From assembly GCA_038087875.1 (NCBI GenBank), contig CM075986.1:11222001-11286000 (forward strand): a stretch of DNA of 64,000 nt, read 5' to 3'. The translations under genes and the position numbers were made by a program. The stretch's first letter is position 1. The number at the start of each line of letters is the position of its first letter. Below, piece by piece: positions 17,884 to 35,331 of the stretch. This stretch comes from Malacoraja senta (lineage: Eukaryota). The notes under the pieces were generated by a model, which was not told where the DNA came from, made no database searches, and worked only from the letters and a program-made list of their open reading frames with translations.

Positions 17884-18514
17884 TTTTAGTTTAGAGATAC
17901 AGTGAGGAAACAGGCCCTTCGGCCCACCGGGTCCGCGCCGACCAGCGATCCCCGCACATTAAAGGGCCTCTCCCACTGAACGAGGTAATTCAAGAGTTCT
18001 CCCGAGTTTCCCCTGATTCGAACTCGGAGAATTACGGTAATACCCACTCGTAGGTACTCGGGGCTCTCGTGGACATTTTTCAACATGTTGAAAAATCTTC
18101 ACGAGCTTACCGCGTTTCCCCAGTACCTGCCGTTAGCGTTTCGAGCCGCTAAGAGACGTCCCGAGCTCCGACGTACCCGCTACGTACATTCTACATACTT
18201 ACCACGAGTTTGATTTTTTTTAAACTCGGGAGAGCTCTTGAATTACCTCGTACAGTGGGACAGGCCCTTAACACTATCCTACACCCACTAGGGACAATTT
18301 AAAAAAAAAACATTTTACCAAACCAATTAACCTACAAACCTGTACGTCTTTGGAATGTGGGAGGAAACCGAAGATCTCGGAGAAAACCCACGCAGATCAC
18401 GGGGAGAACGTAAAACTCAGTACAGACAGCACCCGCAATCGGGGTCGAACCCGGGTCTCCGGCGCTGCATTCGCTGTAAGGCAGCAACTCTACCGTTGCG
18501 CCACCGTGACTGCC
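17884..18514 (-). mobile_element. HE1-like SINE split by a Harbinger MITE
   Basis: SINE sequence is continuous across the insert: cacat-TAA...TAA-cactatcc. Confidence 0.9.
17963..18268. mobile_element. Harbinger MITE (306 bp), TAA TSD
   Basis: TIRs agggcctctcccact / agtgggacaggccct; TAA at 17960-62 and 18269-71; removing it restores the host SINE. Confidence 0.9.
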
Positions 18515-20319
18515 ATTCTAACCATTAATTCCATCATCTTCTCTCTCCTTTTGCAAAGCTTGTATTTTGATTTCAGAGCCACATGCTTTGTTTCAGAGCT
18601 TTAAAAAAAAAGTGAAACTTTAAACATTTCAATACTCAGAGCCTTAGTGACTCCATCAATACTTACTAGCTAATGCCTAGGATACACTGTAATTTGAAAA
18701 TTTGGACAGCTCTACAGCATCACAAAAATCAGTCTCCGATGTGTATTACAAGACCTGCAGCTTCATTCTGTGTTCGCCAGAACAAACAAGACCAACACAG
18801 TGAGCTTTTGTTGAGCGTCTGGCTGTGGGCACAATTACAAGCCTGTTTCAATGTAGGATTGTGCACCCAAAAATGCATCACACAATGACACAATTGGCAT
18901 CATTCTGCTATACAATGCTTTATGTTCTGAAACACTTTCCCTGAAGCCATTTCAACTGGATTCAATTAAAGAAAACCTTTGGTAAAACCAAGACTAAAGT
19001 AAAATTGTTCTCCTATCTGCCACTCAGAAGGCAATACTAACAAGCTGCAGAGAGATGAGTGTGCAGCAGAACCAGCATTTTGAAGCCATTGCATTGTCAT
19101 ACATGCAAAGAATGTAACTTAAATTCTATCTATCAGAACTAAGTAACTGTTCATTACATATCACTTGTTTAAAACGTTTAAATAGTCATGGCACTTGAGG
19201 TTAAAAAATTCCTCTACTCATAAATTACCAAGTATGCTTCTTATATGAAACCAAATTAAAGTTAGTCAAATGAAAAGAGAATGGCAATGATTATTTGATT
19301 TCACCCAATGTGGGGTGACTGTATGAAAGTAGATTCTAAAAATAAGTAAATATTCCAAAGGAAAAGCATCTCTGATTGTTTTTAATTGATTAATGTTACT
19401 TAATTATTTATTGTATAAATGTTGTTGTTCAGGCAATGTGCCGTGAAATTTTTTGCTAAGTTAAAGATGTCCTATAAATGGAAATGTCATTGCATAAATT
19501 TAGTCTCTTTGGTTCCCTAGAATTTTTTGCAATCCAAATACTTCACATCAACTTATACCTAATAACTGTTCTCGGCCCTACAATAAGCGCAAACTGGATG
19601 AATTTGCTGTCAATATGGTCTCCTCTGCATCTCACCCTCCATCTGATGAAATTTCCAATGATGCTCCATAGATGCTGCCTCACCCATTGAGTTTCTCCAG
19701 CATTTTGTGTCTACCCTCATTTCAATAAATCTATGTTGCTGTGCATCTATGGTATGATGAAAGTTAATTATTTTTGTTTAATACATATTATAGTATATTC
19801 ACAAAGATTCTTTTTCATGGCCCCTCACCAAATCATTCCTGTATTCATTAATCCCCCTCCACCTCACCTAGCGGCCAATCCCATTCCCCAATAAATGTAT
19901 ATTTTTATTTGGTCTCTGGTTTCTGGTCTTTCATGCTTGAGATTAATGGAGGATATGGATTTGCTTTCAATATTGAAAGTTCAAAACAGATGATAGCAAT
20001 ACGTTACACGGACATACTCCAAGAGATCTAAAACAAACGAATTTGAGGGAAAGTTAATCGTTCTTGTTTTTATAAACTTAATGAATTAAATCTTCTGTCT
20101 ATAATCCCACATTTTGGTCCTTCAACTACTGGAGACAATGAGCACAACATGGTGACTCGGCAGTTAATTTTGCCACGTTACAGCTCCAGAAATCCCAGTT
20201 CAATCCTGACCTCGGGAGGAGAATTTGCATATTCTCTCCTTGACCACATGGGTTTCCTCTGGATGGTATGGTTTCATATTCATATCAATATTTCTGCATA
20301 AGAGGGATGGGTGGCACAG

Positions 20320-23328: not shown

Positions 23329-24048
23329 TGGGCCCTGACGTGTTTACTTTCTATTCTTTTCTAGTTTGCTGTCAGATTTCTGTTAGTTCATTTCCCATTT
23401 TTATCGTGACGACATGGTCTAGATTTCCCTGTACAGTAATTGGATCCAGTTCCTCTACTTAATTTCCCCACACCCCATTCATTGCCATTATAACATTTTA
23501 AATGTTTTTGTTAATTTTCTGCGTTTCCTTTGCCATTTTTTGTTTAGGCTACATAACATCCTTCACTTTAATCTGCTCCTTGTTTTTAATGAGTCTATTT
23601 GATTGCATTCGTCTACTAAAATCTCTCTGGATCATGTGTTTCTCTCTGCAAGACTCGCGGATTTACGTTTTTTTCCCAGTTGCCCTTCATATTTTGGTAT
23701 TTAATGAACAACTTGCAAGTTGGCATTCTTCTTCCTACAATTGAAACGTGTTATAGTGGGTGCAAAGTGCTTTGGGATGGTTTGAGGTCATGAATGGCAC
23801 TATATAAACATAAATATTTCTTTCTTGTATTTCACACCTTCAGCTGTTTATTGATTTCCCCAGGCAGCTAGTCCTTCTGTATTACAGCACAGGGTAAGGG
23901 AAGTAAGAGCCAGTTTTACCGCTTATGAAATTCATTCCTTCCTTATTTTCTAATTCAAGCCTATCTTGCAGGATGGAGAGGACACAAGTAGTGGAGTTAT
24001 TCAGTTGGTCAGGCAGCATCTCACGAGAACATGGATAGGATGGAGACC

Positions 24049-24254
24049 TGTAGATTGATGATGCATGTGAATCAATCACACTTAGCCAGCATCACTAACT
24101 CCAACCCATTATAACATTTATACTAACTCCCATTCCCAGCATCGTTAGTTGAAGCAGCTAGGATGAACTGACAACACCTCGTTTTGTAATGCTGCCAAGT
24201 TATTGTGTTGATTAAAGATGTGTGTAAATCTTATACAGTTTAATGTGATTTACA
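24049..24254 (+). repeat. 5' LTR
   Basis: TG...CA; ATTAAA at 24211-16; 5 substitutions relative to the 3' LTR. Confidence 0.95.
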
Positions 24255-24272
24255 TGGTGTCAGAAGTGGGAT
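24255..24272 (+). promoter_or_regulatory. 18-nt primer-binding sequence, exact complement of the tRNA-Leu 3' end
   Basis: TGGTGTCAGAAGTGGGAT is the reverse complement of AUCCCACUUCUGACACCA (vertebrate tRNA-Leu CAA/CAG-type 3' end, recalled rather than searched). Confidence 0.85.
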
Positions 24273-24589
24273 GGTGTGGGCGCTTAATGGCAGTGTTCAG
24301 GTCTTTGGGATTAATGCACAGGCGGATTTCATCCTTTCCCTTCTTGACTGTGGCAATCATGGTTGAGACCCAGTCGGTGGGGTCGCTGACTGCTTCAATT
24401 ACGCCTTTGGAGACCATGTCCTTCAGCATAGAGTGAACCCTGTCAGTCATGGCAAATGACAATCGGTGCGGGGCTCGGATTACGGGTGTCACATCGGGGT
24501 CAGTAATAATCTTGTAGGACACAGGCAACTTGCCTAGGTTGTTGTCGAAGAGACCAGGGAATTCATTCAGTGGATCAAAAGAAACTTGC
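24267..24589 (-). pseudogene. Inverted Gypsy RT N-terminal fragment
   Basis: FPGLFDNNLGKLP...PVIRAPHRL...KGVIEAVSDPTDWVSTM...DEIRLCINPKDLNTAIKRPHHP. Confidence 0.9.
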
Positions 24590-24967
24590 AGTTCTGCATG
24601 CGTGCACCGCATCCTCTAGCGATAACTCTGGCCGTCTCAGGAGCTCTGATCTGAGCTTTTGAACGGTGATACCATTCACTAAAATATCCCTCGTTAACTG
24701 ATCAGTCAACTGATCCAATGGCATTTCCTGAAATCGACTACGTTGGGCTAGATACATCAAAGAAGAAATAAATGAGTCAACTCGTTCCCCGGGAAGTTGA
24801 CGACGAGAGAAAAACCTTGCCCTGTCCAAAATGTGATTTGAGGGCAGGTCACAGATCTGGGACAGTTTACGCAGCAAAACATTAGGGTCAGTAGGAGACT
24901 CCGCCGGTGTAATTACCTGGTCATTGGCATCAAAGACAAGAGGCTCAGGCTTCCGACAAGTAGCCAT
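24590..24967 (-). pseudogene. gag: Inverted, internally deleted gag
   Basis: MATCRKPEPLVFDAN...RARFFSRRQLPGERVDSFISSL...RDILVNGI...LLRRPELSLEDAVHACR; zinc knuckle and protease absent. Confidence 0.85.
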
Positions 24968-25032
24968 CGTAAAGTAAAGCAAAACTCACAAAAGATAAAA
25001 TAAAAACCGTTATACAAGAGGAGTGGATAAGA

Positions 25033-25066
25033 CCACTTCTGACGCCATGTAAATCACATTAAACTG
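25033..25066 (-). promoter_or_regulatory. Inverted native PBS (15 nt) plus the last 19 nt of the LTR
   Basis: Reverse complement reads cagtttaatgtgatttaca-TGGCGTCAGAAGTGG-tct. Confidence 0.9.
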
Positions 25067-25109
25067 GCCATTCGGGATCAACTCTGCCAGTGAAGTCTTC
25101 CAAAGAACT

Positions 25110-27437
25110 ATGGAGCAATTATTCGAGGATCTGCCTTGTGCCATTATTGTCGATGATATCCTTGTCTATGGTAAAGACGTAGCAGAACATGACCACAATC
25201 TCAGGCTCATCTTGGAGCGTGCTGTCAAGATCAACCTCAAGTTCAATCCTGACAAGTGCAAGTTCAGGGTTCCAGTGGTCTCCTACGTCGGCCACATCTT
25301 CACCCCTGATGGCCTCAAACCGGATCCGAAGAAAACTACTGCCATCACAGAAATGCCTGCACCCACTGACGTGAAAGGCCTGCAACGTTTCCTGGGCATG
25401 GTAAACTATCTCGGAAAGTTCATACCAAACCTCAGCGAACTAAGCTCCACACTGCGGCAGCTGACAAAAAAGGACACTGCATGGTCATGGTTCCAGCAAC
25501 ATCAGGATGCCTTTGATGTTCTAAAATCCAAACTGACCAGTGCACCGACCCTGACTTTTTTCGACCTGAAACGTCCGGTGGTGATCACCTGCGATGCCTC
25601 GAAATTCGGGCTCGGTGCAGCCTGCCTGCAACCGTCTGATGATGGCACCCTACTACCTGTCGTGTATGCCTCTCGCACCATGACCGACACGGAGCAACAC
25701 TACACGCAAATCGAAAAGGAACTGCTGGCTGTCGTCTTTGCCTGCTCCAAATTCCACGACTTCGTCTATGGCAACATGTTCACGGTCGAGACGGACCATC
25801 AACCACTGGTGACAATCCTGAACAAGCCTATCCATGCCGCTCCAGCTTGCCTGCAGCGCATGATGATGCAGCTGCAGCGGTACGACTTCTCTATTACCTA
25901 CACAAAGGGTAAGGACATGCATGTCGCTGACACACTCTCTCGTGCTCCTCGAGCGTCTTGCGAACAACACCCGCATGAACGGGAGAATTTCACGGTTCTC
26001 GGTGTCGGTCTAATCTCCAGCAAGCAACTGCGCACTCTGGCCGCGCACACTGCTAATGATGATACGCTTCAAGCCCTCTCATCCATCATCAAAACAGGCT
26101 GGCCAGACAAACAATCCAACACGCCCACAGAGGTGCAGCCGTACTACTTGGTCCGTGATGAACTGGTGGTTCAGGATGGTGTGGTCGTTAAGGGTCACAA
26201 GGTAGTGGTACCTTCATCGCTACAAGACGAATACTTCAAAGAGGTACACAGCGGTCACCCAGGAGCCGACTCCACACTGGCACGCGCCCGGGATCTGTTC
26301 TACTGGCCCGGAATGGCCACGTACATCCAGGACCGCGTAGCCTCCTGCCCCACTTGCAACAATCTTGCGCCTCATCAGCAGCGGCAACCCCTTCTGCAAC
26401 AACCTCCACCAGCACTGTCTTGGTCGTCGCTGGCTGCGGACATTTTCGAATGGTGCGGTAAGCACTACCTCGTTCTGGTCGACACATTTTCCAACTGGTT
26501 TGAACTTGACCAACTGACCTCCCTCACGTCTGAGATGGTCATCAAGAAGCTGAAAAGACAATTCTCAGCCTATGGCATTCCTGTCCTTCTGAGAACCGAC
26601 AATGGTCCACAGTTCACCAGCCACTTGTTCAAGCTTTTCGCAGACCGATGGAACTTCCAGCACGTCACAAGCAGTCCCGAGTATCCACAGAGTAATGGAC
26701 TCGCTGAACGCGCTGTCAGAAGCGCCAAGCACTTGCTGGAGGGAGCGCGCATTTCAAAATCAGACGTTTATCTCGATCTCCTGAATCTCAGAAACATCGC
26801 AAGAGATGGAACCTTGGGGTCACCAGCACAGCGGCTGCTGTCGAGGGTGACGAGATCTCCGGTCCCCATCGCACAACAGCAGCTGGTTCCTCGGGTGTTG
26901 AAGCCCGCCACTATCCAGCAACGTCTCCAAGAGAAGCACGACATCCAGAAACGGTCATACGACAGTTCCAGCAGACCACTCCAGCCTCTACTGCCGGGCC
27001 AGGTCGTCCGTCTACGAACTCCAACTGGACATTCTCGTCTGGGGGTTGTTGTACGCCCGACTGATGAGCCGCGATCGTACCTTGTGGACTGTGAGGGAGC
27101 GGTATACCGGAGAAGTCGACAACACCTGCTTGCTGTGAAGGAGCCCAGACTACCGCCTGCTGATCCCTATGCTCCGCCGCTCCAGTTCCAGCCGCCTTCC
27201 GCAATGTCTCCCGCCCGTCCCCGCATGCCTGGCACCCCCCCACGTTCCTCTGTCTCCACTAACCACGGGGTTACACCCACCGCATGTTTCCCCCCTCGGT
27301 CACCACAATCCTCTCCCGTGCGATTTTCACCTTCAGCCTCTACGCCTAATCCTTCAGTTGAGGGAGGGGATGGTTGGGTCCGCACGCGCTCGGGCCATGT
27401 TAGTAGACCACCAGACAGGTATGGCGAGTATGTTTAA
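25110..27437 (+). CDS. pol: N-terminally truncated Gypsy Pol: RT C-half, RNase H, integrase (775 aa, open)
   Basis: PFGINSASEVFQ just upstream; IVDDILV (RT); CDASKFG, EKELLA, TDHQPL, ADTLSR (RNase H); HSGHPG..CPTC zinc finger; ADIF, TDNGPQF, SNGLAERAV (DDE); C-terminal RTRSG..PDRY. The first RT catalytic Asp region is missing. Confidence 0.9.
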   Translation: MEQLFEDLPCAIIVDDILVYGKDVAEHDHNLRLILERAVKINLKFNPDKCKFRVPVVSYVGHIFTPDGLKPDPKKTTAITEMPAPTDVKGLQRFLGMVNYLGKFIPNLSELSSTLRQLTKKDTAWSWFQQHQDAFDVLKSKLTSAPTLTFFDLKRPVVITCDASKFGLGAACLQPSDDGTLLPVVYASRTMTDTEQHYTQIEKELLAVVFACSKFHDFVYGNMFTVETDHQPLVTILNKPIHAAPACLQRMMMQLQRYDFSITYTKGKDMHVADTLSRAPRASCEQHPHERENFTVLGVGLISSKQLRTLAAHTANDDTLQALSSIIKTGWPDKQSNTPTEVQPYYLVRDELVVQDGVVVKGHKVVVPSSLQDEYFKEVHSGHPGADSTLARARDLFYWPGMATYIQDRVASCPTCNNLAPHQQRQPLLQQPPPALSWSSLAADIFEWCGKHYLVLVDTFSNWFELDQLTSLTSEMVIKKLKRQFSAYGIPVLLRTDNGPQFTSHLFKLFADRWNFQHVTSSPEYPQSNGLAERAVRSAKHLLEGARISKSDVYLDLLNLRNIARDGTLGSPAQRLLSRVTRSPVPIAQQQLVPRVLKPATIQQRLQEKHDIQKRSYDSSSRPLQPLLPGQVVRLRTPTGHSRLGVVVRPTDEPRSYLVDCEGAVYRRSRQHLLAVKEPRLPPADPYAPPLQFQPPSAMSPARPRMPGTPPRSSVSTNHGVTPTACFPPRSPQSSPVRFSPSASTPNPSVEGGDGWVRTRSGHVSRPPDRYGEYV

Positions 27438-27464
27438 TACACTTCCTTTCCACATTTAATCTTT

Positions 27465-27475
27465 AGGGGGAAGGA
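27465..27475 (+). promoter_or_regulatory. Polypurine tract
   Basis: agggggaagga directly before the 3' LTR. Confidence 0.9.
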
Positions 27476-27681
27476 TGTAGATTGATGATGCATGTGAATC
27501 AATCACACTTAGCCAGCATCACTAACTCCACCCCATTATAACATTTATACTAACGCCCATTCCCAGCACCGTTAGTTGAAGCAGCTAGGATGAACTGACA
27601 ACACCTCGTTTTGTAATGCTGCCAAGTTACTGTGCTGATTAAAGATGTGTGTAAATCTTATACAGTTTAATGTGATTTACA
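27476..27681 (+). repeat. 3' LTR
   Basis: 206 bp, TG...CA. Confidence 0.95.
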
Positions 27682-28154
27682 GAAGCTTCCTCCAGATTTT
27701 ACCACTGATGGAGACACTCAAGGTAATCTATGTTGGCCTCTTAACCTGCAAGCATTTGGGATGGGGGACGAAGTGAGTGCACCCAGGGACAAACCCAAGA
27801 TGTAATGTGCAGCACATGCAATAATAATTCCCATGACAATTGAGAAAGGAATTGGATGTTCAGCTGAGGAAGGATCCCAACCCGAAACGTCACCCATCCT
27901 TTCTCCAGAGATGCTTCCTGACCTGCTGAGTATCTCCAGCACTTTGTGTCTATCTTAGGAATAGCTGGGCTCAAATGGTCGAGCAGCTTGCTCTAGTCAT
28001 TGATTATTATTATTGCATGTGCTGCACATTACATCTTGGGTTTGTCCCTGGGTGCACTCACTTCGTCCCCCATCCCAAATGCTTGCAGGTTAAGAGGCCA
28101 ACATAGATTACCTTGAGTGTCTCCATCAGTGGTAAAATCTGGAGGAAGCTTCTG
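27680..28154. repeat. Perfect 149-bp inverted repeat (27680-27828 / 28006-28154) with 177-bp spacer
   Basis: Arms identical by manual comparison; the spacer holds an older PLE/hammerhead fragment (~27861-27957). Confidence 0.9.
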
Positions 28155-29535: not shown

Positions 29536-30235
29536 GAGGGGGTCAAGGAAAGAGCGTTCACGATCTCTAAACTAAACTCTTACCTGTAATTCAGACATTT
29601 AGTGTCACTAACATCCAAGAGGAAGAACCAATTAGTCCAAATTTCCCCAGATATTGGCCCAAGGCATGTTGAATTAAAAAAAGAAACATTAACAATAAAT
29701 CAGAATTATTTTACTGTCACGCTATCATTCCTGACAACTCCTTTCTCAGTCTGCTGATCAACATATCGTATCATCCTCTCACTTGTAATGTTGCAATTAG
29801 AGTGTTTTGAATCTTTGGAATTCTTTAGCCCAGACAGCTGTGAAGGCCAACTCACTGAATATATTTGAGGTTAAGATTAGCAACTATTGGTCTGTGGAGA
29901 AGTCAAAGCTTTTGGGGAACAAGCTTGGAAGTTAAATAACCAATTCTTGAAAACATAAAAATTAAATGTTCTACAAGACACTCAAGAGAGTACAGAAATA
30001 AATTCTGAAGAAATCAATTCTGGTTCTCCCGTGATTCTTTGACAAGCTCTTTCAATGCTTTAACTCCGTCAAGTTATTTCTTACTCTACTATTAAGCATT
30101 TCCGTGCAATGCGTAACATTCACTTTGACCATAGCTGTGAGGTCCAGTAGAAATTTCAAACAGTGCCACAACACTTTGGCAAGTGTTGGGAAGAGAAAAA
30201 ATACAGTTCATAAACCTCCAAACAATCTAGCTTCA

Positions 30236-30531
30236 TGAGATCAGCTTGCCCATACATTGACACTGTATACTGAGATAGCTTGTCTGTACATTAACTCTGT
30301 ACACTGAGATAGCTTGTCTGTACATTAACTCTGTACACTGAGATAGCTTGTCTGTACATTCACACTGTATACTGAGGTAGCTTGCATGTACATTAACTCT
30401 GTACACTGAGGCAGCTTGCATGTACATTGACACTGTATACTGAGATAGCTTGCATGGACATTGACACTGTACAGTGAGACAGTTTGCCTGCATATTGACA
30501 CTGTACACCAAGATAGTTTGTCTGTACATTG
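30236..30531. repeat. 34-bp minisatellite, ~8.7 copies
   Basis: Unit tgagatagcttgtctgtacattaactctgtacac starting at 30271, 30305, 30339, 30373, 30407, 30441 and 30475, plus flanking variant copies. Confidence 0.9.
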
Positions 30532-31257
30532 CTTGCAGCCAAAGACAGCTGCCAACTCAGAGCACCTATGATGGTTCAGTGGTGTCAATGCAATGTCCAT
30601 GGTACCACAGGTGTCCGCTATGAAATTTGTCATTGCCTTCAAGTTGTCTCCACATGCTTGGGTTGATTGAAGAATAGGATCTTTGAAGATCAAGATCTCC
30701 AATACCCCCACTAAATGCATGGTCCATTTTCCAGCAATGGACTCAAAATGAACCAGGCCTTAACTCAAATTAGTGGTTGGGGACAAGTGGCAATAGGGGG
30801 GGGTGGGGAGGGGAGGAGTCACATTTTGTAATGCTGTGGATTTTGTTTTGTACTAATCAGTGTAAATAAAATAAAGATCGAAGAATGAAGCAGCATCTGT
30901 GAAGGCAAAAGGTGCTCGTTAAAGTTTCAGGTCAGGACTGATGCGACGTCTCAACCCAACACACCAACGTACAAATTTTGCCTAAATTGATGCTGCCTTA
31001 TCCACTGAGTTCCTCCTGTGGCTGTTCTTTGTTCCACAGTCCAGCATCTGCAGTTTATTTTGTTTTAATAACTTCACGGCTCACTGTTGTGCAAGGCTAA
31101 CCAGAAAGAAAAAATGCCAAATCATTATCACGTTGACACAAGTCAGGTTGTCCGTGTTGTCAAAGATCAAGAGTCTATAACAATTGCAAACTATGCATCT
31201 GGACAAAAATAAGAACAATAAAAAATTGCAATACATCTCAAGGATTGCCAGTGCACT

Positions 31258-31301: not shown

Positions 31302-31867
31302 AGGAGTGAGCTAAACATCCGTCTTTCAACCTGAGGACATGGGTTGAATATTGGTGTAAAATTCTTCAGATTTGCCAAATTGGTTTAAATCTAGTTTTTT
31401 AGGTGAACCATATTTCAGCTGAAGAGAGACATAACGTTCTGGAGCAACACAGTGGGTCAGGCACCTGTTCCTTTCCTCCAGAGATGCTGCCTGACCTGCT
31501 GAGTATAAACCAGCATCTGCAGTTCCTTCCGACACCTTTATTTCACCTTTTTGATTCACTTGATTCCTCTGTATTTTTTTAATTGCTGAGCCACTTTTCC
31601 ACACCGATTATCTTTCCCTATGTCAATACTGGACAACTTCTTAGCACGTTTTGTATTGGTGCTTTTAATGCAGTTAAAGAATGCTCGTCAATTCGTAAAA
31701 TTAAATTTCATAACATGTACTAAATGTGATGGAAATTAAACACAATAATAAGTACAGCTAACAATCATAAATAGATTGGGAACACCAAACCAGCAATCAA
31801 AAAAGTGTGAACAAAATTTGTGGTTGCAATCTCTCTACATACTGAACAATTAGTGCTAACAGTACCG

Positions 31868-32107
31868 TTTTGAGCCGGTCCCGTCATCTCATTTTCACCC
31901 TACAGCCTGTTTCCTTTATCATCGTTACTTTTTTGCATATCTTTTATTCATTTTTCTTTATCTCTTCACATCATCGTCTATATCTCTCATTTCCCTTATC
32001 CCTAACCAGTCTGAAGAAGGGTCTCGACCCGAAACATCACCCATTCCTTCTCTCCAGAGATGCTGCCTGTCCCGCTGAGCTACTCCAGCTTTTTTTGTCT
32101 ATCTTCA
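31868..32107 (+). mobile_element. Penelope-like 3' region with mutated hammerhead (32011-32038)
   Basis: CTGAAGAagggtctcgacccGAAACaTC; homologous to 62760-63017. Confidence 0.8.
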
Positions 32108-32795
32108 CAAAGTCCTGTTGGTTTTTGACTAAGTTCAGAAAGAAAGGTTATCTTTATTTGAGTAAATGCCACTGGACAGATAGGACAACAGGAAGAGAGG
32201 GAATGTACCCTTAGGGAAGGAAACATGAAGCAGCACAACAATATGTAGGTCAAAAATTGATTCAAAGTCAAAGCAGATTATTTTCCAAATAGTATTTACA
32301 AAAACATTTTTCAGAAAAACCAATGGCCTGGAATTTGCAACAAAAATAGCTCTGACAAGAAGAAAATGTCTGTAGTAAACACATGCAACATAACACACTG
32401 GAATCTAAGTCACCATTAAGACTTTTTCGGATCTTGAATGTGTTATTCTAGCCTTCACTGCACAATCAGTCCAGAATCAGTGAAATCATACATTTTTTTT
32501 CCTCCTGTTTTTATTTCTGAAGCATTCACCCTGCGAAAAGCACGAAAACTTACATCCACATGAATGTGATGTGCTTATTTTGTGGCGAGGGCACAGGTTT
32601 GGTTTTTGAGCAACCTTTCTGGATTTTCATAAACAAACATGCATGTTAACTGAATGACAAATGTCTGTGTATTTAAGAAAATTAAAGCTAATTTATGATA
32701 TTTGTATTTTCCACTTAAATATGTGTATACCCTAAACTTTATTTTGCTTCCTGTTAAATATTTAACAAGTTAGAAGTTGGTGCGTTTACTTTTTA

Positions 32796-33063
32796 GGGGA
32801 GGCACAGTGGCGCAGCGGTAGAGTTGCTGCCTTACAGCGCCAGAGACCCGGATTCGATCCAGACTCCGGGTGCTGTGATCGCGTGGGTTTTCTCCAGGAC
32901 CCACACCCCAAAGACGTGCAGGTTTGTAAGCTTATTGGCTTCTGTAAATTGCTCCTCAGTGTAGGATGCAAAAGTAGGATAACATCGAACTTAGTGAGTG
33001 GGTGATCGATGTTCGGCATGGACTCAGTGGGCCGAAGGGCCTGTTTCCATGTTGCATCTCAAA
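32796..33063 (+). mobile_element. HE1-like SINE
   Basis: Head, core with deletions, tail. Confidence 0.85.
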
Positions 33064-33635
33064 AACTCTGTGGTTTATGGTTTTAGAATTCTTCCATCTA
33101 ATTGGTTTATTTAGTTTAGTTTGTTGTCACGTGTACTAAGGTACATAGAAAAGCTTTTGTTGCGTGCGGAAAGACTAAACATGATTACAATCAAGCCATC
33201 CAGAGAGTACAGACACATGATAAAGGGAATAAGGTTTAGTGTAAGGCTAGTTAGTCAGTTTAATGATATTGTCGTTGCTTGATGCCACAGGTCCTCCAAA
33301 GGTAGCTCCTGATTGCAACAGACATCCATAAAGGGGACATCCATCCCGGGATGTTTCTCTGTAGTCAGTGACAGGTGTTGTTGCTGGGCTAATACCTATT
33401 TGCTTTTTCACCGTAAAAATCTCAAATTTCAATCTTCTGTCATGAACACATGATAAAGAATAGATCAACAGTCTTCTTCTAAATCTGTACATCTGTACAC
33501 ACTGCAGATAATATCCCAGTTGCCCTTGAATGTTAAGAATTTCAGCGTTCACCTTTGCAAATGAGGTTGACAAATGGTCACCTATCATTTCTACCATAAC
33601 GTGGATGAAGTGAAACAACTTATCTATGCATCCAT

Positions 33636-33922
33636 GGGCAGCACAGTGGTGCAGCGGTAGAGTTGCTGCCTTACAGTGACAGAGACCCGGGGACGGTCTT
33701 GATTATGGATGCTGTCTGGCCGGAGTTTGTACGTTCTCCCTGGGACCACGTGGGTTTTCTCCGGATGCTCCCGTTTCCCCCTACATTCCAAAGATGTGCA
33801 GGTTTGTAGGTTCTATAAATTGTTCCTAGAGTGTAGGATAGAGCTAGTGTATGGGGTGATTGTCGATCAGCGCTGACTCAGTGGGCCAAAGGGCCTGTTT
33901 CCACACTGTATCTCCAAACTAA
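33636..33922 (+). mobile_element. HE1-like SINE
   Basis: Head, core and tail similarity. Confidence 0.85.
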
Positions 33923-34184
33923 TAGCGTTGATTGTCTCCTGGATGTTATTTGAAAATATTGTACACACATTTCAGATCAAATAATTTGAAGCAAATTATA
34001 TTCTGGAGATAATAATAATAATAATAGATTTTATTTATATAGATGGATACACAAAAGACTGCAAATGCTGGAACATTAAGCAAAAAACTAAACTGCTGGA
34101 GAAACTCAGTGGGTCAGGCAGTATCCATGGATGGAAATGGATAGATGACATTTGGAATCAGAACCTTTCTTTAAGACTGGATCT

Positions 34185-34616
34185 TAAAGGGCAGGGGAGA
34201 TGCACTGGAGATCCTTCCCTTCAGAAGAGAATTTAAGCTGAGACCTCTGTAGAAGGGTCTCGACCCAAAACAATACCCATTCCTTCTATCCAGAGATGCT
34301 GCCTGACCCGCTGAGTCACTCCAGCATTTTGTGTCTGTCGTCGGTGTGAACCAGCATCTGCAGTTCCTTCCCACACACCTCATCTGCCCTTTCAGGTTGT
34401 TAGAAAAGATGACTATTTGAAGACTAAAGATGACAGAAAAGAGTTTCAGGGAAGAACAAAGCAATTCTCTCCCTGTGTTCTGGCCAATGTTCATCACTCA
34501 ATTGATTTTCTCTGAAGCAGATTGTCTCATTACTGTCATTAGAAGCGTGCCGTACACAAATGGGCTGCCATGTTGTAATATTACCACATTAACTACACGA
34601 TTAAAGCTCATTGGCC
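34185..34616 (+). mobile_element. Old DeuSINE (SacSINE1-like), interrupted by a PLE piece (~34248-34376)
   Basis: ctgccctttcaggt...ctatttgaag...tctccctgtgttctggccaatgttcatc...cacaaatgggctgcc resembles the Deu domain as recalled. Confidence 0.6.
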
Positions 34617-35050
34617 CACTCTGAGAATACAATAGACAATAGGTGCAGGAGTAGGCCATTCGGCCCTTCGAGCCAGCACCGCCATTCAATATGATCATGG
34701 CAAAATATACCATTTAATGCAAAACACCTTTGTTTTCCTAATGCCTTGTTCATTTCCTTATGCTAATTCACAATGTGTTATCTTTATTGACACATTCTTG
34801 ATATTGTCAAGAATGCCTGGTCCAAACAAGCTGCTGCACATCCCTCTGGAAACACTGAATAGACCTGAAAAACAAAACACTGCAATGCTGGCAGCTTGAT
34901 TTTTTTTAAATATCCCACTTAAGAAGTTGTTTTCAATCCCACTTCTTAAGCCAGTGACCCATGGCAGCCAATTGACATTAAATTGTTCCCTCTGTCACTC
35001 CACTGGCCTTTTCATCAAAATATACTGGCCAGCAACCTGGATTCACACAC

Positions 35051-35331
35051 TGGTAGAGTGGTAGAGTTGCTGCTCTACAGCGCCAGAGACCCGGATTCAA
35101 TCTTGACTACGGGTGCCGTATGTGCGGAGTTTGCACATACTCCCCGTGACCTGTGTGGGGTTTCTCCAGGATCTCCAGTTTCCTCCCACACTCCAGACAT
35201 GCAGCTTTGTAGGTTAATTGGCTTGGTATAATTGTAAATTGTCCCTCGTGTGTATAGGGTGGTATTAGGGTGCGGGGATTGTTTGTCGATGCTGATTTCC
35301 ATGCTGTATCTCTCAACTAAAATAAACTAAA
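35051..35331 (+). mobile_element. HE1-like SINE
   Basis: Similarity to other copies. Confidence 0.85.

Follow-up and report, generated by a model that had tools for sequence, protein, structure and literature searches.

An inverted gag-RT block in a Ty3/gypsy element of Malacoraja senta, probably begun by a mis-primed plus-strand strong-stop DNA

Most of what is known about errors of second-strand transfer comes from HIV-1 proviruses and cell-culture vectors. LINE-1 5' inversions, in the account that Ostertag and Kazazian reportedly gave in 2001, are made by twin priming, in which the second priming takes place on plus-sense RNA and a small deletion or duplication is left at the junction. Twin priming is target-primed and belongs to a non-LTR element without tRNA, PBS or strong-stop DNA, whereas the element described here is of the LTR type. 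Among defective HIV-1 proviruses, aberrant or delayed second-strand transfer has left tRNA(Lys3) inserts at the deletion junction (PMC12657518), and internal inversions occur in about 1-3% of HIV-1 proviruses (PMC9278108). The locus analysed here lies in a stretch of 64,000 nucleotides of the Malacoraja senta genome, hereafter the window, and, like the HIV-1 second-strand-transfer errors, it is a defective product that was integrated all the same (PMC12657518). The HIV-1 acceptor was minus-strand DNA and the outcome a deletion, whereas the acceptor here would be plus-sense and the outcome is an inverted block; in addition, the window element shows no read-through past nt 18 or 19 of the tRNA, and it is a germline Ty3/gypsy element and not a retrovirus. 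With the inverted HIV-1 proviruses (PMC9278108) it shares flanking LTRs and an internal reverse-complement segment, often accompanied by deletions. In the literature consulted, the breakpoints of those proviruses were not tied to the PBS or the tRNA end and no mechanism was given for them, whereas the window element has a defined left junction. In the literature we found no description of a strong-stop end priming an inverted block, which is no proof of absence. Second-strand transfers with tRNA sequence at the junction and counted proviral inversions are known already; what appears to be new is an inversion primed by strong-stop DNA.

The element is a defective Ty3/gypsy LTR element of 3.6 kb (3,633 bp) at window positions 24049-27681. 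It is bounded by direct repeats of 206 nt with TG..CA ends, both on the plus strand: a 5' LTR (24049-24254) and a 3' LTR (27476-27681) that are 97.6% identical (5 differences over 206 nt, 2.4% divergence). In the 5' LTR a conserved ATTAAA signal (24211-24216) is followed, 20 nt downstream, by a CA (24236-24237). No target-site duplication of 4-6 bp is present, as AGACC stands before the 5' LTR (24044-24048) and GAAGC after the 3' LTR (27682-27686), and this absence leaves the integration history of the copy not clean. The 18-mer TGGTGTCAGAAGTGGGAT (24255-24272, plus strand) abuts the 5' LTR and is followed by a block in minus orientation; from 25067 to 27437 the element continues in plus orientation with pol, from mid-RT (PFGINS) through RNase H and integrase, as indicated by Pfam, blastx and the comparison with a canonical relative. 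Within this sense part an ORF at 25110-27437 is open for 775 aa, and the Pfam domains follow in the order RVT_1 (C-terminal part), RT_RNaseH / RT_RNaseH_2, Integrase_H2C2 and rve. The polypurine tract AGGGGGAAGGA (27465-27475, plus strand) adjoins the 3' LTR.

The canonical relatives are an element on contig L004 and proteins annotated as 'Gypsy retrotransposon integrase-like protein 1' or 'K02A2.6-like'. The gag piece of the window, used as query, matched a single protein, P0121, with 82% identity, and its source is the 12.5-kb ENA contig L004. The L004 element is collinear (LTR, PBS, leader, gag, ~500 nt, RT N-terminus, 157 nt, rest of pol, 3' LTR), it is 81-89% identical to the window at the nucleotide level, and its LTR is homologous to the 5' LTR of the window. 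The top protein matches are Gypsy polyproteins, and identity to full-length teleost polyproteins is 53-58%; by blastx the sense pol at 25059-27422 corresponds to aa 593-1352 of full-length relatives of ~1,350 aa. Like its canonical relatives the window element has a tRNA-Leu(CAA) PBS abutting the LTR and the same domain order. The relatives are collinear, whereas in the window copy the PBS-to-RT block is inverted, the protease and 157 nt of RT are missing and the PBS is 18 nt long. The paired TG..CA LTRs, the tRNA-complementary PBS, the polypurine tract and the RT-RNase H-integrase order are those of Ty3/gypsy elements, and a collinear, complete gag-protease-RT region is what the copy lacks: gag and the RT N-terminus are inverted, and the protease and the 157 nt of RT are gone. 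On its sequence features the element is a defective derivative of a Ty3/gypsy (Metaviridae) LTR retrotransposon with tRNA-Leu(CAA) as primer. No second copy of the element was found elsewhere in the window, and exact-protein look-ups with three window ORFs gave no match.

The inverted block begins with the N-terminal part of RT, which ends in ...KRPHHP (24267-24591, minus strand; 89% identical to L004 8054-7730); by blastx, 24567-24268 matches aa 443-542 of full-length relatives. Next comes the N-terminal part of gag (24593-24967, minus strand), with its ATG at 24967-24965 and 81% nucleotide identity to L004 7226-6882; here 24925-24593 matches aa 75-180 of full-length relatives, and the gag part as a whole aa 71-183. 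It is followed by the 5' untranslated leader (24968-25032, minus strand), placed by alignment to L004 6603-6720, and by a PBS of 15 nt, TGGCGTCAGAAGTGG (25033-25047, minus strand). The block ends with the last 19 nt of an LTR (25048-25066, minus strand), identical to 24236-24254. In consequence of this arrangement 24236-24269 and 25033-25066 form an inverted repeat of 34 nt, composed of the 19-nt LTR end and the 15-nt PBS, in which 1 position is mismatched (E 1.4e-9 by BLAST within the window). The preliminary description of this locus had given the same order (antisense RT N-terminus, gag, 5' UTR, PBS and 19 nt of LTR, then sense pol at PFGINS), and both blastx and L004 bear it out; the structure as a whole is present where it was placed, by the sequence itself, BLAST self-comparison, blastx and L004. 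Several features had gone unmentioned there, namely the gag-protease deletion, the 157-nt RT loss, the absent target-site duplication and a 149-nt palindrome.

Comparison with L004 fixes both breakpoints. At junction 1, L004 continues from CACCATCCCA into TGAAG (His-His-Pro-Met across this point), whereas the window continues from CACCATCCCA into CTTCTGACACCA. The window departs from L004 right after CATCCCA, and RT sequence and tRNA copy have exactly ATCCCA in common, which places junction 1 inside nt 13-18 of the 18-mer; the same position is found in a second contig, L005, discussed below. The overlap of 6 nt (24267-24272, TGGGAT/ATCCCA) is thus common to the 18-mer and the RT codons CAT-CCC-A, and the earlier statement that TGGGAT is the antisense of these codons stands against the canonical sequence. 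At junction 2 (25066/25067), L004 reads GAGAATG/CCATTCGG and the window TTAAACTG/GCCATTCGG, rejoining the canonical sequence at GCCATTCGG; there is no overlap or microhomology. Between the two breakpoints 157 nt of RT are lost. A further junction lies within the inverted block at about 24588-24593 (minus strand), where the sequence reads GCATGCAG/AACTGCAAG and the gag C-terminus, the zinc-knuckle region and the protease are absent, a gap of ~500 nt relative to L004 and ~770 nt relative to the teleost relatives. A contig of X20 departs from the window at 24591. This gag-protease deletion may have been in the template already, or it may be the product of a third switch.

The 18-mer is exactly complementary to the 3'-terminal 18 nt of tRNA-Leu(CAA). 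The mammalian tRNA-Leu(CAA) 3' end is printed as ...GGTTCGAATCCCACTTCTGACACCA, and a published probe starts with the 18-mer (PMC10359600, PMC7997516). The match is 18/18, CCA included, as had been claimed before, with these published sequences and a read-through contig, and not the skate's own gene, as reference; there are no tRNA genes within the window. The inverted PBS matches the tRNA complement in 14/15 positions and is followed in sense by TCT, also in agreement with the earlier account. Native PBSs in related elements are shorter than 18 nt: all five compared (L004, three teleost relatives and the window's own inverted copy) have 13-15 nt, and none has the 18-mer that intact members might have carried natively. 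In L004 the PBS is TGGTGTCAGAAGTG, 14 nt, and in the three teleost relatives it is 13-14 nt, each directly after the CA of the LTR. Since the relatives' PBSs are only 13-15 nt long, an 18-nt PBS is not native to this group of elements, and the 18-mer is best taken for plus-strand strong-stop DNA that was templated by the tRNA. As a separate observation, positions 6589-6616 of L004 read 14-nt PBS, AC, TGGGAT, CCACTCC, so that the last 6 nt of the tRNA copy recur after another 2 nt, which may be the trace of an earlier repair or slippage in the PBS region.

We consider it probable that the inversion arose when plus-strand strong-stop DNA mis-primed, in the cDNA of this copy or of an ancestor. 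Plus-strand strong-stop DNA would consist of the LTR and an 18-nt copy of the tRNA 3' end. Its extension on the short native PBS would be blocked or hindered, as its last three bases GAT would face TCT. The 3' end ...GTGGGAT could instead anneal to the ATCCCA hexamer at the His-Pro codons of RT on a plus-sense strand, which would be either a co-packaged second RNA or plus-strand DNA. Extension would then copy this strand backwards through the RT N-terminus, gag, the leader, the native PBS and 19 nt of the LTR. A second, homology-free switch would return synthesis to minus-strand DNA 157 nt downstream of the first site, and plus-strand synthesis would thereafter continue to the 3' LTR. We infer in which order the steps took place, which plus-sense strand was the acceptor, what caused the second switch and whether the copy is the direct product or descends from a rearranged lineage. 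Two features of aberrant plus-strand transfer are found here, a junction just after an intact 5' LTR with a tRNA-templated PBS copy, and short complementarity (6 nt); the usual minus-strand DNA acceptor with a simple deletion is replaced by a plus-sense acceptor and an inversion. Because the acceptor is plus-sense, the inversion is a variant and not a typical case of aberrant second-strand transfer.

The same sequence at junction 1 would also result if the donor had carried the 15-nt native PBS and had overlapped its acceptor by 3 nt (TGG/CCA). Such a donor predicts an arbitrary CCA site, whereas the CCA that is observed is preceded by ATC, which is rare: only 1-2 of 80-95 CCA sites in these elements have ATC in front. 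The hexamer ATCCCA occurs at two sites only in the PBS-to-RT stretch of the progenitor, at junction 1 and at 24306-24311, and the 6-nt overlap at junction 1 is rarer than chance among CCA sites. Because ATC rarely precedes CCA, an 18-nt donor is ~40-60 times likelier than a 15-nt one, and the shorter donor is strongly disfavoured. Beside the second hexamer we noted an X18 contig in which the 18-mer end (24272) plus an extra TA is joined to antisense RT at 24312, just past the second TGGGAT (24306-24311); its arrangement may represent another inverted copy made via the other ATCCCA site, or a deletion variant.

Two readings of the junction go further than the comparison allows. The preliminary description had presented it as a record, at nucleotide resolution, of the stop of reverse transcriptase at m1A58, but the terminal 6-7 nt are common to the acceptor and the stop is only bracketed, with the donor end lying at nt 15 to 18 or 19. 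To take the single mismatch of the 34-nt inverted repeat (T vs C at PBS position 4) as a sign of tRNA templating would over-read it, as ordinary mutation explains it equally well. With 2.4% LTR divergence 0.8 differences are predicted in 34 nt, and we rejected the mismatch as uninformative on tRNA templating. The relatives have T at PBS position 4, and the five LTR differences all have A/T on the 5' side as well. These differences (24104, 24128, 24142, 24203 and 24208 vs 27531, 27555, 27569, 27630 and 27635) have, in 5/5 cases, A/T on the 5' side and C/G on the 3' side, and a family contig of another organism has the 3' LTR state at 3 of the 5 sites. Errors or deamination in strong-stop DNA could lie behind the 5:0 asymmetry, as could recombination between copies or mere chance.

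Junction 2 counts against the proposed mechanism, as it lacks microhomology and as the depth of 19 nt into the LTR is not accounted for by it. The point of the second switch (24236, the CA 20 nt past ATTAAA) could be the R/U5 border or a template end; no 5'/3' overlap that would delimit an R region was found in transcript-like contigs of teleost relatives. A different route would explain this junction. A nascent minus strand in RT would jump to the 3' end of a 19-nt abortive tRNA-primed DNA, copy these 19 nt and 18 nt of the tRNA up to m1A58, and re-land on the RNA at ATCCCA. The outcome would be a collinear element with a 37-nt inverted LTR-PBS insert, whose 34-nt inverted repeats would later recombine and flip the segment between them. 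It employs the same 6-nt overlap, and it accounts for both the blunt junction 2, as an end-to-end jump, and the length of exactly 19 nt. Still, we regard this detour as quite improbable, since it requires an additional rare inversion step and since L005, which has the same left junction, a full LTR and another inverted block, is directly predicted by the simpler mis-priming model.

Rearrangement of the integrated copy during host replication or repair, by fold-back or microhomology-mediated template switching, could likewise leave a deletion together with an inversion that is flanked by an inverted duplication. Such events typically give inverted duplications joined through short microhomology, and they would fit both the perfect palindrome of 149 nt next to the 3' LTR and the absent target-site duplication. 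The microhomology that fold-back or MMBIR would lead one to expect is missing at junction 2, and chance would have to place the left breakpoint at nt 15 of the PBS and at a CCA preceded by ATC (~2% of sites). Junction 1 is also found again in a diverged contig whose LTRs are different, and in the runs of several organisms, for which a private event cannot account. A chromosomal origin is in our view highly improbable.

This recurrence came to light when a search with the antisense RT ORF gave P0122, a protein whose C-terminus ...HHPTSDTM is the same PBS-encoded tail. Its source is L005, a Logan contig from a separate run. Read as reverse complement, L005 has an LTR end and then the identical 18-mer, followed by antisense RT and protease corresponding to L004 8054 back to 7429 (626 nt), by ~20 nt of unassigned sequence and then by sense pol from RNase H. 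Its divergence from the window copy is 11% in the internal part and about 23% in the LTR. The left junction, from the 18-mer to antisense RT, is identical in both copies, which are old and distinct, whereas the inverted block and the right junction differ; the search for further copies of the inversion that had been proposed earlier thus recovered the left junction and not the right one. Another candidate carrier of a related junction, P0123/L006, was rejected on inspection because the junction is absent. For a 65-nt probe over junction 1, 4/4 sampled words were found in runs of three organisms and 3/4 in small runs of several more, with only 4 words sampled and 23 of the 35 possible words being junction-specific. 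A contig in a low-coverage run of another organism starts at 24267 and stops at 24593, the two junctions flanking the RT block, and its ends are as one would expect for graph branch points at multi-copy alternative junctions.

L005 and the wide occurrence of the probe words argue against misassembly as well as against a private chromosomal rearrangement. An assembly error that merged reads of different copies had to be considered, as the family is highly repeated, its contigs break everywhere and the neighbouring perfect palindrome is possibly an artefact itself. Among the matches listed from Logan contigs, dominated by SINE and family contigs, none bridges either junction of the window locus. 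The identical junction 1 in the independent contig L005, the junction words in many runs and the tRNA-defined ends, which mis-joins do not produce, make such an error scarcely credible. Nesting is another conceivable source of opposite orientations: a second copy would have inserted in antisense, and two deletions would have spared only the present block. High-copy families often show self-nesting, and the present one is very abundant. An LTR end is found at neither of the two junctions, two independent deletions would have to stop at the PBS and 19 nt inside the LTR, and the 6-nt overlap with the tRNA copy would be a coincidence that L005 shares; nesting therefore has only a very slight chance of being correct. 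Autointegration was rejected since neither junction lies at an LTR terminus.

For the mis-priming of strong-stop DNA that had been proposed for this locus, the hexamer overlap, the short native PBSs, the rarity of ATC and L005 all speak in favour, but in place of the direct product the locus may hold a descendant of it, or the outcome of one among several recurrent events. Sharing of junction 1 points either to a recurrent hot spot at the hexamer or to an old rearranged lineage that was mobilised in trans. The internal 19-nt LTR piece, which is identical to the element's own LTR, and the differing right junctions would slightly favour recurrence, and the fact that the junction words are so widespread would rather point to propagation.

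A same-species contig, present in two runs, has the LTR and the 18-mer, then G-TGAACCCAC, and then sense pol at 26340. The window at 26340 reads GCCTCC, the next six bases of the tRNA-Leu(CAA) complement, so that a 34-nt tRNA copy is joined by a 6-nt overlap to a normal minus-strand acceptor. This read-through contig belongs to the same class as the HIV-1 deletions with tRNA(Lys3) inserts (PMC12657518), and it indicates that microhomology-guided aberrant plus-strand transfer does occur in this family. Opposite A58 it has a G, and position 19 in the window has the same base; given this G, as many as 7 nt could overlap at junction 1.

Taken over the whole family, we put forward as a tentative possibility that the short PBS (13-15 nt) leaves strong-stop DNA with a mismatched tail and thereby leads to recurrent mis-priming at the few complementary hexamers that gives both deletions and inversions, and that at least one inverted derivative, with a perfect 18-nt PBS and with LTRs and polypurine tract kept, was mobilised in trans and became a non-autonomous lineage across related species. 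The inversion junction would be a defined one, in which the tRNA-templated strong-stop end paired via six bases to a plus-sense site, and its presence in two diverged copies suggests a simple rule for where inversions start. A family-wide census could measure, in vivo, the strong-stop end on the tRNA, the frequency of read-through at m1A58 and the cost of a short PBS. Copies of this kind also confuse the annotation of transposable elements, as gag and pol stand on opposite strands within one LTR pair.

The surroundings of the element are rich in repeats. On the 5' side it is flanked by a SINE tail in antisense. On the other side, a perfect inverted repeat of 149 nt (27680-27828 / 28006-28154, 100% complementary) begins exactly at the end of the 3' LTR, with a spacer of 177 nt that includes a SINE fragment. 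Its right arm and flank are matched without differences by an X18 contig that starts at 28006 and are present with ~95% identity in X1, a related organism. This palindrome either arose after the LTR insertion or is an artefact of the assembly, and it may explain the missing target-site duplication. Further downstream, the tandem array at 30209-30548 has a period of 34 nt and comprises at least 7 copies, which overlap and are 73-88% identical. A SINE-like repeat with TCCAGAGATGCTGCCTGACC is present in many copies and in both orientations (18329-18514, 19665-19720, 27870-27955 and 31477-35195), and its summed contig depth is extremely high in every run compared.
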